64,000 bases of DNA from Selaginella moellendorffii (GCF_000143415.4 NW_003314425.1:124001-188000); one strand, 5' to 3'; positions 43,700 to 63,769 are shown, counted from the stretch's first letter. Numbers and translations: made by a program. The notes: generated by a model from the sequence alone, not told the origin.

Positions 43700-44390
43700 C
43701 ATGTAATGCCATGTCAGCACCTACCATGAGCCCTAGATTAACCAGCGCGGCAGTCCACGCATTGGCCATCAGGACAAACGTGGCACCGTGCTCTACGCGT
43801 AATGGCCCGAGCTGGCTGCCACTGAGAACCGCGATCAGTGTGAAAGTTTGATCGCGTCGAAGCTAGCTAGATCCAATCGGCCGCAGCTTGCATACATGTG
43901 AATCAACGGGTTGAGCAGCATCTCCCTGTGAGAATGATCGCAAGCGCCGCAAGGAGAAGGATCCCAGCCACGCAATCTCGCAGTGGATCTCCTGCCCTAA
44001 CCCAGCCCCTCTAAATATCCCACATTCCCGCCCAATTCGAACAGCATACTCCACGTAGGGCATTCCACGTCACTATGCTGACAAGAGATTGTCACACTCG
44101 AACTCTTGCCACTTTGTCTCAGCACAATGCCTCCACAAACTAGGCTGTTTGTCTGCATTATTTTAGGAACTCTGATCATGCGTGTTTTTTTTTTTTTTTT
44201 TTTTTTTTTGTGTACAGAAAAGTTACTTGGGTGCAAAAGCATTTGCCCAATCAGAGGAAATTGAAGAGAAGCATTCAATGATAGCGCTGAGTGAGATGGT
44301 GCTTTGAGGTCTCGTGTGGACAGCATTGATGTGTAGCTTTCCGTGTTCGTCATTTTGGCAAATTTTCGATCGGATGCAGAAAGAAGTTTA
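43700..44390 (-). pseudogene. Heavily deleted remnant of the PPR gene at 46041-48872
   Basis: Shares ELGGNVG.L, GLG.EIH.EIA, LIHMYA.CGRLDLAS segments and 3' flank with the intact copy. Confidence 0.75.
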
Positions 44391-44990
44391 TCTAATTTAC
44401 GACCTTCAACATCATTTAATTATAATTTATATTAGATTAGATTTACATCATGATGCTGGTAGTGTCCAAATACAACACATTTCAACTTTTGATATATCAA
44501 GAAAATCAGTTCTAGTCTGAAGAGATTGACTATGAAGTCAAGTCGGTCCTGCCAAAACTTCGACAAGTCCCAAAAGCTAGTTGGAGACTTAACATTACGT
44601 TTCTCACCCAAACACAATAAAAAATGGTTTTGGTATAAATTATCAAATAGTAATATTATTTCTATTGTGGTTGCCGACATATCCAATCTTGAAGTCACAG
44701 AGTAAAATTATATTTAGTGTGTCCTAAAGTCCATAAGTAATAGCCAGTCAAGTTGACTTTGACTTCTTTTTACTTCTCATCTGGAGATCGTCTCTTGAAT
44801 GGCTCTGAAGTGAACGATTTCCGGATAAGAGATTCAATTATACTAATGGTGCTTGTATCATTTGGTGCGTTACAACGAAAAAACTGAAAATAATAAACCA
44901 AACACTAATATATCAATGCTGCAAACACTAGAACATTTGCACAACAGATTATTGTCAATCCTTTTATTTGGAACATGACCAAGTCTAGCT

Positions 44991-45395
44991 TCAGATGTCC
45001 CCAACGTTGGGATTTCCAGAGTCCCTGCAATTCCCACAATAGTTCAGTGTGGCCTCGCAATTACCCCCATCGAATGCATGGCTTCCGCAGAGTCGGCAAG
45101 GCTGGTTTTCATACACATGGAGAAACTGCTGCTTGAGAACTGCCCCACTCACGGATGGATAGTTGCCATCGCACCTGAAAATTGCGGTGCAATGGCCAGA
45201 AACACGAGAAGTGAAGCCATTGTAGATTGTTCCATCGGTGTAGCGAGAGATTGCTCGCCGGCAATCGGCCTGGTTGACGCGAGATCCACAGAGTCCAGAG
45301 CCATTGCAGTTGTCGTTCTTGGCGCAGCTGGAGGACCCAAGAAAGATCACAAGAAGAATAGCAAGAAGAGAAAAGAGCTTGAGAGAAGACGCCAT
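44991..45395 (-). CDS. Secreted KP4 killer-toxin-like protein, copy 1
   Basis: Signal peptide plus 10-Cys mature part with NCNGSGLC...SGAVLK...CRLCGS...TLNY, paralleling Ustilago virus KP4 NCRGSSQC...SGTEAC...CRVCGS...TVNY; TATA box upstream. Confidence 0.8.
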   Translation of the reverse strand: MASSLKLFSLLAILLVIFLGSSSCAKNDNCNGSGLCGSRVNQADCRRAISRYTDGTIYNGFTSRVSGHCTAIFRCDGNYPSVSGAVLKQQFLHVYENQPCRLCGSHAFDGGNCEATLNYCGNCRDSGNPNVGDI

Positions 45396-45589
45396 TGGAA
45401 TTTGCTAGAAAGAATGCGATTTTCATCTGGCTTATAAAGGGGTATTAGTATTACATGACCTTTTAATTTTTAAAGCTCTTATTATTTTATTTTTCTAATC
45501 GAGAACTAAAACTCAAGTGGTTCTCACCGCGGAAAATATCAACAGGAAAACAACAAAACTATCGTCTAAATAATGCTTCGTGAATTTTC

Positions 45590-45830
45590 TAAGCTTTTCA
45601 CGAGTAAACGTTGAGCTGTCTTTGCTTGGACTATTGATCACGATAAGAGTTACGTGATTCATCTAAAGAAGAAGTTTTGTTGTTTTCCTTGATATTTTGG
45701 ATCCACAGTTCTCGAGATGTCATCCTTGTTAAGGCTAGAAGCCTCCAGAAACGCAACCGTAGTCTATTTTAGAAAACCTTGCTCCTCCAAAAGCAATTGT
45801 AAGTACTTTGTTTCCTGGTGCTTGGACTCT
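45590..45830 (+). pseudogene. Decayed MAG glycosylase fragment (cassette unit 1)
   Basis: cttgatattttggat...accttgctcctccaaaagcaattgtaagtact resembles the last exon and 3' end of the intact MAG gene. Confidence 0.65.
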
Positions 45831-46040
45831 AATTCTCGCTTCTAAAACTATGTTCTATGTGCTTGATAGAGGTTTATTTTTCATCAGTTTCATGAGCCTT
45901 GAAACTTCAGCCATAAACGTCTGAGCCAACGAGTCTGCTATAATATGCTCTCTGCGGAACAAGTATGTGAGAAATATAGCTATGACCACTCCAAGCGTTC
46001 GCCATGTGTAATGCCATGTTAACACCTACCATGAACCCGT

Positions 46041-60800: not shown

Positions 60801-61932
60801 ACCGTCGTATCACCGAGAAGCTGCGCAGGTCTTTCTATTGGCTGGAGATGCGACGTGATATTATCCGGTATGTGCGTAGCTGCGTTTGGTGCCAAGCTCG
60901 TAATACTCCACCTTGTGCTGTGGAAGGACGGTTGGAGTCAATTGTAGTTTCCCGTCCGTTTGAGTTGGTGGCATTTGATCTTATGGGACCTTTTCCACGA
61001 TCGACTGCTGGCAATGAGTATGTTATTATTGCTTCTGACTACTTGACTCGTTGGGTGGAAGTTGGTGTTCTTGCTAGCGCCTCTGGAACTGTTGTTGGAT
61101 ACTTCCTCCTCAATCGAGTGGTGTTCCAGCATTCTTGTCCAGAGCGGATTCTTTCGGATAATGGTCCTGCATTTATGGCTGAGGTATTTCATGTTTTGAC
61201 ATCTCGGTTGGGGATATGCCACACTTTTATGAGTGCTTATCATCCACAATCAGACGGTCTGGTGGAACGTCTCGTTCGGACATTCAAAGGGATGATTGCA
61301 AAGTATGTGAACTTTCAGCATTCGGATTGGGATGGTTATTTGCCGTCTCTTCGGTATGCATATGTCACAGGGGTGTAGAGTTCTATTAGTGCTTCACCAT
61401 ATAAACTTCTATATGGTCATGATCCAATATTACCAACAGAGTTGGGTTTACCTTCGCGATTGCCACGAGCTCCTGATGCTAGGTCATGGGATCAGTATTT
61501 GACAAGCATTCTTCCACTTGTCCGAGCAGAGTCTGCCGAACACTTAGGCTGCATACAAGTGGGACAATAACAGCGCTACAACTCCCATCATCATCCACCT
61601 GCGGAGTACAAAGTGGATGATTTGGTGTTAGTCCATTTTCCCCATCTTACAGTACGTGGTTTATCGAAGGGGCTCCTTGCGCAGTGGAAAGGACTATATC
61701 AGGTGTTGCGGCAAGTTGGACCGCAAGTTTATGAGGTTTGGCATGACGTTCAGCAGGCCGATCCTCCGGAGATTGTGCATGTGCAGCGGTTAAAATGCTT
61801 CATACAAAGGGATCAGGAGCAGTTAATACCATCTACAGATCTGCCGATGCCTCCTCCTGACGTTCCTCCAGATCCCGGCCCATCTACAAGAGAACTCTGA
61901 CGGCCTTCCATTATTCCGAGAGGAGGGGATGA

Positions 61933-62106
61933 TGTGAGGGCCAAGTGTACGGCTACAATGCCGTATACTAATATTAGCATAGTGGATTTTGGTAGTCGTC
62001 GGATTGGTTTCAATCTGAACCACTCGCTCCTGTATATAAACTAGGGTTTTTGGGCTAATTGATATGCACATTTCTGTATTCCCTTTCCATATTCCATGCA
62101 CTCACA
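61933..62106 (+). repeat. 3' LTR
   Basis: Direct repeat of 56612-56785, preceded by a polypurine tract. Confidence 0.95.
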
Positions 62107-62529
62107 CTTTTAAATAATTCTGTGAACTAAGGAAAATAAAAAAACGAGCTGCCACATGGCCGATGCTGCTGCCGGGTGAGCAAGGCCAGGAGAAGACAGA
62201 AGAATCCCTCCTAGCGTTTGGTGGATGGAGCTGCCCTAGCCATACTATGGATCATCCAGTGGTGGAGAACTCACTGCTGTGGAGCGATCTTCAGGTTCAG
62301 CTTTTTGAGCCAGCCCAATCGAAGGAGCAATTGAGAAAGCAAAGCCACCAGAATATTTCAAATATTCTTGCCTCTAAACCTTCGATAGTTATTTAGATAT
62401 TAATAATGCAAATATAATTTTTATTATAAGTATATTCTTAAATATTAAAGAATATATATGAATATTCTTCTGAGCCAGAAAATTCATAGTAATTTTGAAA
62501 TATCTAAATGATTCATCATAATGTTTGAA

Positions 62530-62700
62530 CATAAGTCGTGCCATCTTTTGTTCTCTCCTCTAGAACAAGTGGCCTTTTCTCCAGATGCCATTCTCGTTGG
62601 AATCAAATATGCACTGCCCAAGGACATGGAGATTTGCTATCGCTGGAAATATTTTGCAACTCCAAAATCACTTGTAAGTATGCCACTCCTCATGCTTATA
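62530..62700 (+). pseudogene. Decayed MAG 3' fragment (unit 5)
   Basis: SPDAILVGIKYALPKD matches SPDAILVGPRVGIEYALPKD of the intact gene, with deletions. Confidence 0.8.
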
Positions 62701-62864
62701 AATCAATAATCTTGCTTTTAAAACCTTGCCTTCTAGCAGGTAAAAACAAGTTTTAACATGGTTTGATAAGCCTTGAAATTTCAGCCACTTTCAATAGGCG
62801 ACAATTCAAGGCAAGCTTTAAACTCTCCTTTTGATGGATCACACAAACAATGTAAGGTGTAAGT

Positions 62865-63769
62865 ATGAGATCGTTTCTTCTAATAGCTCTTATTCTAATC
62901 TCTCACCTGGATTCGTGCTATGCACCACCGCATGGGACTTTTAGAGCAAGACTCGCTCATGGTATGCTCTCCGTTGAACAAGTGAGAAGAGTGGTAGAAA
63001 GGATCGAAGGCTACGTGGAAAATATACGTGATAACGTTCCATTTCAGGCTGGAAGAACGATTGAGCTTGTCGTGAGGTTTGCTAGGAATACGTTTGTGCA
63101 CGTCAATTTACTACTGTTTAATAGAGTGTATGACGATGACGGCGCAGGTGTTTGTACCATGCGTCCAGCGCTCCAAACTCTGTTGGGCCAAGACCTACGG
63201 CAGAGTATACTAGATATGTGTGAAAGCATACGGGAAGAGTTACTGGATAGAGATCGTTGGTACGGTCTCATTAATATTGTTCTTGAATATTTTGGAATTC
63301 ATTATTTTGTGGAAGATTGTTCTCCAACTTCTCCTCACTTAAATCGCCTGATGATCACAAGTATGCAGAGCTTCTTGGGGTTGACAGCGATATAAAACAT
63401 TGTTGGGTCTATATTACATCCCTGCTCAGTGGCTTTAAAAACACTCTTGGCTCGTATTTGCTGGGTGGAAACAGCTTAATCTCGGTTGATAGTTCTTATA
63501 GGTTGACAATGCAAAAAAATTGCAATCTCGTACTACAGAGTCCCAAGGGAATAATCACATGGAGCTCGGGAACACAGGGAAAAGATTCGGGTTGCTGCTT
63601 AACCCTGCTAGTTGATGGCAAATTGGTGATTGTTGGATCTAGAGGGGAGGTGTGGTCCAGCAAAAAGAGCTCCATCCGAAACAAGTTTTATGCTCTTGTG
63701 ATTGAGAATCTTGGTTACTTGGCCATTTACAGAACAGACACTGCCACACTTATTTGGAGATCTTTTTAG
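62865..63769 (+). pseudogene. Secreted unknown-domain + B-lectin fusion split by one frameshift near 63300-63320 (pseudogene or sequence error)
   Basis: ORF 62865 gives a signal peptide and N-domain; ORF 63317 gives the linker and B-lectin. Together they are collinear with the single ORF at 13606. Confidence 0.75.

Follow-up and report, generated by a model that had tools for sequence, protein, structure and literature searches.

A tandem birth-and-death array of KP4-fold, DNA glycosylase and lectin-fusion genes in Selaginella moellendorffii

Unit map of the array

The region described here lies between 43.7 and 63.8 kb of a 64,000-nucleotide stretch of Selaginella moellendorffii DNA (GCF_000143415.4, NW_003314425.1:124001-188000), hereafter the window, in which all positions are counted from the first letter. 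It consists of about five collinear units (U1 to U5) with the gene order KP4-fold gene (-), MAG glycosylase gene (+) and lectin-fusion gene (+), MAG being a 3-methyladenine DNA glycosylase of the AAG/MPG type. Altogether the array contains three intact 134-residue copies of the KP4-fold gene and one wreck, one intact six-exon MAG gene and four sets of scraps, one nearly intact lectin fusion and two wrecks, and one intact PPR gene together with a 0.7-kb remnant.

The units were mapped by blastn and tblastx self-comparison, by tblastn with each gene product and by sensitive blastn of the flanks. Weak flank homologies were scored as collinear chains against 100 dinucleotide shuffles, and the resulting z values are included in the list of features (nt, nucleotides; aa, amino acids; ORF, open reading frame; LTR, long terminal repeat).

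Unit 1
43702-44403 (-): PPR remnant, rearranged 3' third; blastn identity 77-84% to 46007-46681
44462-44990 (-): 3' flank block of KP4-1 with both spacer motifs; chain z 9.7 and 12.9 against the U2 and U3 blocks
44991-45395 (-): KP4-1, intact ORF, 134 aa; Pfam MU117 1.2e-19; exact NCBI S. moellendorffii protein
45447-45913 (+): promoter block, MAG scraps (to 45808; exon 6 pieces 45688-45729 and 45773-45808) and MAG-lectin spacer (45811-45913)
Unit 2
46041-48872 (-): PPR gene, intact single exon, 943 aa; Pfam PPR 2e-96
49645-50049 (-): KP4-2, intact ORF, 134 aa; Pfam MU117; exact NCBI S. moellendorffii protein
50132-51013 (no strand): private insertion of 880 nt, separating the promoter block of KP4-2 from the MAG scraps
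51014-51564 (+): MAG scraps of exons 1, 3, 5 and 6 (to 51482), then spacer; z 10.0 against U4
Unit 3
52212-52616 (-): KP4-3, intact ORF, 134 aa; Pfam MU117; exact NCBI S. moellendorffii protein
52718-53137 (+): promoter block and MAG scraps of exons 1, 3, 5 and 6; z 8.4
53225-53849 (+): dead lectin fusion, internally deleted and with no frame free of stops; 76-85% nt identity to 62865-63775
Unit 4
53938-54388 (-): KP4 pseudogene and promoter block, start-codon region gone; tblastn identity 59%
54426-55573 (+): intact MAG gene, 285 aa, six exons read from sequence
55691-55989 (+): dead 5' lectin-fusion remnant (tblastn, frame reading)
Unit 5
56396-56521 (no strand): MAG exon 3 scraps, an abutting inverted and direct pair
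56612-62106 (+): dead Ty3/gypsy LTR retrotransposon, 5,495 nt; LTRs 56612-56785 and 61933-62106
62535-62682 (+): MAG exon 5 and exon 6 scraps; z 9.5
62865-63769 (+): lectin fusion with signal-peptide-like start, an unnamed domain of about 150 aa and a GNA-type B-lectin domain

Every unit-to-unit chain score exceeded all 100 shuffles (z 3.9 to 13.7), whereas a chain z of only 0.2 was obtained for the negative control, in which the 3' block of U1 was compared with the left side of U4. The U1 block at 45447-45913 formed collinear chains onto U3, U2, U4 and U5 (z 10.6, 7.5, 3.9). A first-pass annotation of this stretch had described about five units sharing gene order and spacer motifs and had proposed a self-comparison as a check. 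That comparison does display collinear units, and together with tblastn and flank blastn it recovered all the remnants at their described positions: the KP4-fold gene is intact in units 1-3 and dead in unit 4, as seen from the ORFs and the alignment; MAG is intact only in unit 4, with remnants at 45.6, 51.1, 52.8 and 62.5 kb; and the lectin fusion is nearly intact, a fair description, only in unit 5, with remnants at 53.2 and 55.7 kb. An inverted MAG exon 3 scrap at 56.4 kb is additional to these. Two of the earlier statements hold in part. Both spacer motifs exist at the sites given, the first at 44462, 49033 and 51695 (three matches in one of the 100 shuffles) and the second at 44745, 49248 and 51918 (three matches in none of them), but they are confined to U1-U3. 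Also the PPR gene, described as co-duplicated in the first two units, has related sequence in both, but in U1 this is only the rearranged 3' remnant; its tblastn alignment to PPR residues 591-942 is gapped and includes one small piece in inverse orientation.

Both haplotypes are represented in the published S. moellendorffii assembly, and near-identical proteins are found on two other scaffolds, as would be expected if haplotigs or collapsed reads had been misplaced in tandem. Such an artefact is nevertheless extremely improbable here. The copies are 4.4-4.7% apart in the coding sequence and far more in the flanks, each with many private indels, and different genes are intact in different units. 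Furthermore, the retrotransposon (with 94.8% identical LTRs) and the 880-nt insertion are each private to one unit, and the signatures of the individual copies are found again, in unchanged order, on another scaffold. The units are head-to-tail and collinear beyond chance, and the copies are too unlike for an assembly artefact. The region is thus confirmed as a real and well-defined tandem segmental duplication, an ordinary birth-and-death array of the kind the first-pass annotation had suggested.

The genes and their remnants

All three intact KP4-fold copies matched MU117 (PF15474) with 71.5-72 bits against a cut-off of 30.4, covering profile positions 2-105 of 105. MU117 was the sole family listed by hmmscan, and a limit as permissive as E ≤ 10 brought up no match to Pfam KP4 (PF09044); phmmer with the same protein against the PDB did not find 1KPT, the structure of the Ustilago maydis virus P4 toxin UmV-KP4. 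The Selaginella proteins carry the RefSeq name 'meiotically up-regulated gene 117 protein', and their 90% cluster includes nine distinct sequences, the three of the array being encoded on a contig of 217,020 bp and the other members on a 2.10-Mb scaffold (SELMODRAFT_413754, 413755, 413786, 413787 and 413789) and on a 1.85-Mb scaffold (416510 and two more). In a HMMER scan of 1.84 billion representatives, only 63 clusters were matched by the KP4-fold protein. The closest relative was a Ceratopteris richardii protein (66%), followed by Linnemannia, Podila and Mortierella (47-54%) and then by ascomycetes, including the Schizosaccharomyces Mug117.

The AlphaFold2 (AF2) model of the protein, based on an alignment of 34 of these relatives, reached a pLDDT of 85. 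Its top structural match was 1KPT (Foldseek E 1.4e-4, TM 0.63), on which it superposed with Z 10.4 and a root-mean-square deviation of 2.5 Å over 94 of 105 residues; the next matches were Zt-KP4 8ACX (Z 8.0) and then DUF26 ectodomains and Gnk2 (ginkbilobin-2; Z 6.4-6.8). With a hydrophobic N-terminal helix at residues 5-18 of the model and ten cysteines after residue 25, the protein is predicted to be secreted and disulfide-rich. The model assigns the KP4 alpha/beta-sandwich fold to a protein that belongs to MU117 and not to Pfam KP4, and the earlier label 'KP4-like' is consequently apt for the fold but not for the sequence family. A PF15474 cluster has been placed among the KP4 structural groups (PMC12382754).

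Pairwise comparisons of KP4-1, KP4-2 and KP4-3 revealed no indels in 405 nt, with dN 0.02-0.03, dS 0.09-0.14 and omega 0.16-0.37, and the mature part varies only at residues 96 and 121. The adjoining flanks of 120-250 nt had Jukes-Cantor distances of 0.14-0.42 and 6-12 gap events. The alignment of the U4 pseudogene included 10-12 gap events, totalling 82-86 nt, and 12-15% substitutions, and no trace of a KP4-fold gene was found by tblastn or flank blastn on either side of the retrotransposon in U5. Purifying selection has probably kept all three KP4-fold copies intact. In the core of KP4-1 and KP4-2 only 3 of 315 nt differ, with an identical run of 227 nt (P = 0.002 on third positions), while the PPR remnant near KP4-1 is only 77-84% identical to the PPR gene near KP4-2. 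Because the identical core lies amid far more diverged surroundings, the pattern suggests that the cores of copies 1 and 2 were exchanged by gene conversion.

Long antisense ORFs (119-161 aa) extend across the full coding sequence of all three intact copies and are probably a by-product of codon composition:

45078-45437 (+): antisense ORF over KP4-1
49606-50079 (+): antisense ORF over KP4-2
52158-52643 (+): antisense ORF over KP4-3

The intact MAG gene of U4 is divided into the following exons, with introns of 69, 48, 61, 61 and 51 nt, all GT-AG:

54426-54785 (+): MAG exon 1
54855-54926 (+): MAG exon 2
54975-55098 (+): MAG exon 3
55160-55230 (+): MAG exon 4
55292-55349 (+): MAG exon 5
55401-55573 (+): MAG exon 6

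When the exons were searched one at a time, pieces matched PF02245 profile positions 25-57, 58-104 and 150-181, exons 4 and 5 being too short to score singly. As read from these exons, the gene appears open and spliceable, with a complete PF02245 domain. In the alignment of exon 3 with human AAG (1EWN), the stretch YVY..YG...N is kept. Exon 2 reads VEAY...CH, matched by eye without a full alignment; its EAY and H presumably correspond to the human AAG motifs, of which we take the catalytic and intercalating residues to be E125, Y127, H136, Y162 and N169.

The MAG scraps of the other units are short. Those of U3 include an exon 1 scrap at 52829-52845 and an exon 3 scrap at 52862-52897 (12 aa at 92%). 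The inverted exon 3 scrap of U5 is 89% identical over 104 nt to 54989-55092, and the direct piece beside it covers 56493-56521. The distance from the exon 1 scrap (matching 54460-54476) to the exon 3 scrap is 27 nt in U2 and 16 nt in U3, compared with about 600 nt in the intact gene, and the exon 6 scrap lies 326-427 nt from the promoter block in U1, U2 and U3, compared with 1197 nt in U4. The U2 and U3 wrecks thus share a deletion of about 600 nt, and U1 is equally compact; MAG would therefore have been wrecked already before U1-U3 were derived from one another. The layout points to two or three independent losses of MAG, and not to four.

The end of MAG exon 3 and the start of intron 3 are inverted-duplicated in two units (U2 51159-51274 and U5 56396-56521), the U2 case being a palindrome with 40-nt arms that are 90% complementary. 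This exon 3/intron 3 junction may be a fold-back-prone site.

The lectin fusion of U5 is open in two frames, with the change of frame between 63314 and 63335. Splicing of a candidate GT-AG intron of 53 nt (63309-63361) or 62 nt (63309-63370) would restore a continuous reading frame. A frameshift is somewhat the more probable of the two because of the linker similarity and because the paralogue elsewhere in the window is single-exon:

13606-14547 (+): lectin-fusion paralogue, intact, single-exon, 313 aa

The B_lectin match (PF01453) of the U5 gene was 1.7e-08, with 35.3 bits against a cut-off of 32.4, and its C-terminal 100 aa matched 34 lectins of known structure at E ≤ 0.01 (down to 1.6e-17). 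Judged by eye, the mannose motif QxDxNxVxY is absent in full from all three lectin sites, site 1 reading Q-K-N-C-N-L-V-L-Q and sites 2 and 3 being without Q, N or Y. For the N-terminal domain there was no Pfam match, no Atlas lead and no homologue among proteins of 97-308 aa, and its AF2 model from two sequences reached a pLDDT of 45. The domain shares 24% identity with its counterpart in the paralogue (E 0.002). Kinship of this domain with KP4 was also considered and was unsupported, the profile comparison against MU117 giving a probability of 0.45%. Sensitive flank blastn detected nothing of the lectin fusion in U1 and U2 beyond a 21-nt match. Directly past the lectin remnant of U4, a 74-nt unit is repeated twice with one mismatch (56001-56148).

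Duplication history

The array is probably the outcome of tandem segmental duplication in the nuclear genome in two phases, followed by the loss of redundant copies. In the first and older phase, a block formed of the KP4-fold gene (-), a head-to-head intergenic region of about 140 nt, MAG (+) and the lectin fusion (+) would have been copied to give the ancestors of U3, U4 and U5, after which deletions would have spared a different gene in every unit, namely the KP4-fold gene in U3, MAG in U4 and the lectin fusion in U5. In the second and younger phase, a sub-unit consisting of the KP4-fold gene and the wrecked MAG, at one stage with the PPR gene, would have been recopied to give U1 and U2. 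All three KP4-fold copies would then have been kept by purifying selection, with the cores of copies 1 and 2 exchanged by gene conversion, and later a Ty3/gypsy element would have inserted in the MAG wreck of U5. The copying itself may have taken place by unequal crossing-over or by replication slippage, and the order of the phases, like selection for dosage of a secreted and maybe antifungal KP4-fold protein, is put forward as the likeliest course of events.

Copy-specific end residues are common to KP4-1 and SELMODRAFT_413789, to KP4-2 and 413787, and to KP4-3 and 413786, all three of the latter on the 2.10-Mb scaffold. Because these residues recur there, the array would have existed before the two loci split. 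By protein accession order, the locus on the 2.10-Mb scaffold seems to have four intact copies, compared with three in the window.

Three points weigh against the two-phase history and the role of selection in it. At such divergence the flank alignments are unreliable, which makes the contrast between dS and flank distance only semi-quantitative. The three KP4-fold copies are nearly equidistant (18-19 differences) and so do not order the events within the second phase. Also silent-site constraint in a highly expressed gene could be a partial source of the low divergence between the cores of KP4-1 and KP4-2.

The same gene order in all units, and the survival of one intact copy of each gene, would be explained as well if one intact cassette had been amplified five times and the genes lost independently in each unit, both secreted-protein genes being selected for amplification. 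The deletion shared by the MAG wrecks of U2 and U3, with the equally compact U1, makes this unlikely; in addition, there is no second intact lectin fusion, the best copy changes frame, and U1 and U2 are without a lectin remnant apart from the 21-nt match. The first-pass annotation came near to this course of events in proposing that two kinds of secreted effector had been amplified and the genes retained in a complementary manner while the repair gene returned to a single copy. The return of MAG to one intact copy within the array is supported by our results. Amplification of both effectors is not, as several intact copies (three) exist of the KP4-fold gene alone, the lectin fusion having at most one, with the frame change at 63314-63335. 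Nor is complementary retention a signal in itself, since for three genes in three old units its chance probability is 6/27 = 0.22.

Reciprocal retention could also have been selected if the KP4-fold gene, MAG and the lectin fusion formed a module co-regulated by a promoter that the KP4-fold gene and MAG share head to head. In U4, about 70 nt do separate the conserved KP4 promoter block with its TATA sequence (54289-54355) from the ATG of MAG at 54426. However, all three intact KP4-fold copies are without a working MAG alongside, the retention pattern in the three units is within reach of chance as given above, and no known pathway is common to a DNA-repair enzyme and secreted proteins. Co-regulation is accordingly given very little weight as an explanation.

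The two-phase duplication is also preferred to the spread of the young KP4 sub-units by a gene-capturing transposon of Helitron or Pack-MULE type instead of unequal crossing-over. The shortness of the sub-unit (about 2.3 kb) and the insertion with inverted ends in U2 would agree with such a transposon. The collinearity of U1 and U3 with U2 jumps from 50131 to 51014, and the 880-nt insertion between these positions ends in an inverted copy of 12-16 nt of the promoter block (inverted 12-mer 50113-50124 / 51001-51012); it matched no Pfam family and resembled nothing else in the window. Yet a search of 40-64 kb for inverted repeats of at least 60 nt, terminal or otherwise, found none, the arrangement of the units is strictly head-to-tail, with collinearity to the old ones, and there is no transposase or helicase ORF apart from the unrelated gypsy element. 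Transposon capture is therefore highly unlikely.

The gypsy element, absent from the first-pass account of 43.7-63.8 kb, lies within the U5 MAG wreck, with the scraps of exon 3 on one side and that of exon 5 on the other. Its LTRs are 174 nt long, with TG..CA ends, and CTTT is found on both sides as the target-site duplication, of which 4 nt are certain. The domain order is PR-RT-RNaseH-integrase, and pol has at least four in-frame stops, since successive pol ORFs lie in a common frame, each terminated by a stop. A 12/23-nt tandem repeat (about 8-16 copies) is present at 57687-57875, upstream of the first long gag-region ORF (57834-58448).

An Rfam scan of 42-64 kb gave no match at the gathering score. 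Left of the array, a weak RdRP match (PF05183) was seen at 42343-43005 (-), with E 0.0026, below the cut-off. Farther away in the window, a tandem duplication at 9446-12905 has ORFs that are 80-86% identical and without Pfam match, and weak inverted similarity (70-77%) connects 2987-4267 with 17074-18314. The lectin-fusion paralogue is situated in an AT-rich island (GC 0.28-0.38 at 12-16 kb). The wider region has several genes with a bulb-lectin domain, since B_lectin is carried also by a receptor kinase:

6629-9064 (-): G-type lectin receptor kinase ORF, 811 aa; B_lectin, S_locus_glycop and Pkinase

Function and known systems

UmV-KP4 and Zt-KP4-1 inhibit fungal growth (PMC12382754), Gnk2 is called an antifungal protein in the title of its PDB entry (3A2E), and gastrodianin-type lectins are antifungal, the entry 1XD5 being titled 'antifungal protein GAFP-1'. 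By analogy with these, a defence role is plausible for the KP4-fold gene and the lectin fusion. The MU117/KP4-fold gene is likely the target of selection in Selaginella and is therefore a candidate for antifungal or developmental activity. It is possible, though doubtful, that a fungal-type MU117 gene, with its nearest non-plant relatives in Mortierellomycota, was transferred horizontally to early vascular plants and became multi-copy by dosage selection and gene conversion, acting as a secreted antifungal protein while the co-duplicated genes were discarded. That the repeated linkage of the KP4-fold gene with the orphan-domain lectin fusion represents a two-part secreted defence module is less likely still than such a transfer.

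In comparison with UmV-KP4 (1KPT, PF09044), the Selaginella protein is likewise small, disulfide-rich and predicted to be secreted, and its model superposes on the viral structure; the sequences, however, are only 21-22% identical, and the Selaginella protein, known from sequence and model, is of the MU117 family with no PF09044 match. The moss KP4-like genes (Guan et al. 2023), as far as they are presented in the works citing them (PMC12513842, PMC12382754), belong to the PF09044 group, unlike the Selaginella protein. The latter matches full length the Pfam family MU117, that of Schizosaccharomyces pombe Mug117, but whereas the family is mostly fungal, the host here is a vascular plant. The domain of human AAG/MPG and Arabidopsis MAG (PF02245) is covered by the Selaginella MAG exons, but the Selaginella gene has a basic N-terminal extension of 90 aa and is situated in a decaying array. 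The C-terminal 100 aa of the lectin fusion resemble GNA-type lectins (SCAfet 1DLP, gastrodianin 1XD5), from which the Selaginella domain differs in lacking a full QxDxNxVxY site and in being fused to an N-terminal domain without detectable relatives.

The array itself changes no general view, and its wider interest is only in the preserved fungal-type KP4-fold gene. It is, at the same time, a clean and small example of the fate of a multi-gene block after tandem duplication, in which selection and conversion maintain one gene in multiple copies, deletions erode the genes carried along with it, and a sub-unit that has decayed can be amplified anew. The birth-and-death clusters of plant defensins, lectins and NLRs are alike in their head-to-tail units, in pseudogenes beside intact copies and in purifying selection on the survivors, and also in signs of gene conversion and in transposon insertion. 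In contrast to those clusters, the Selaginella unit held three unrelated genes, once together with a PPR gene, and a sub-unit that had already decayed was amplified again.

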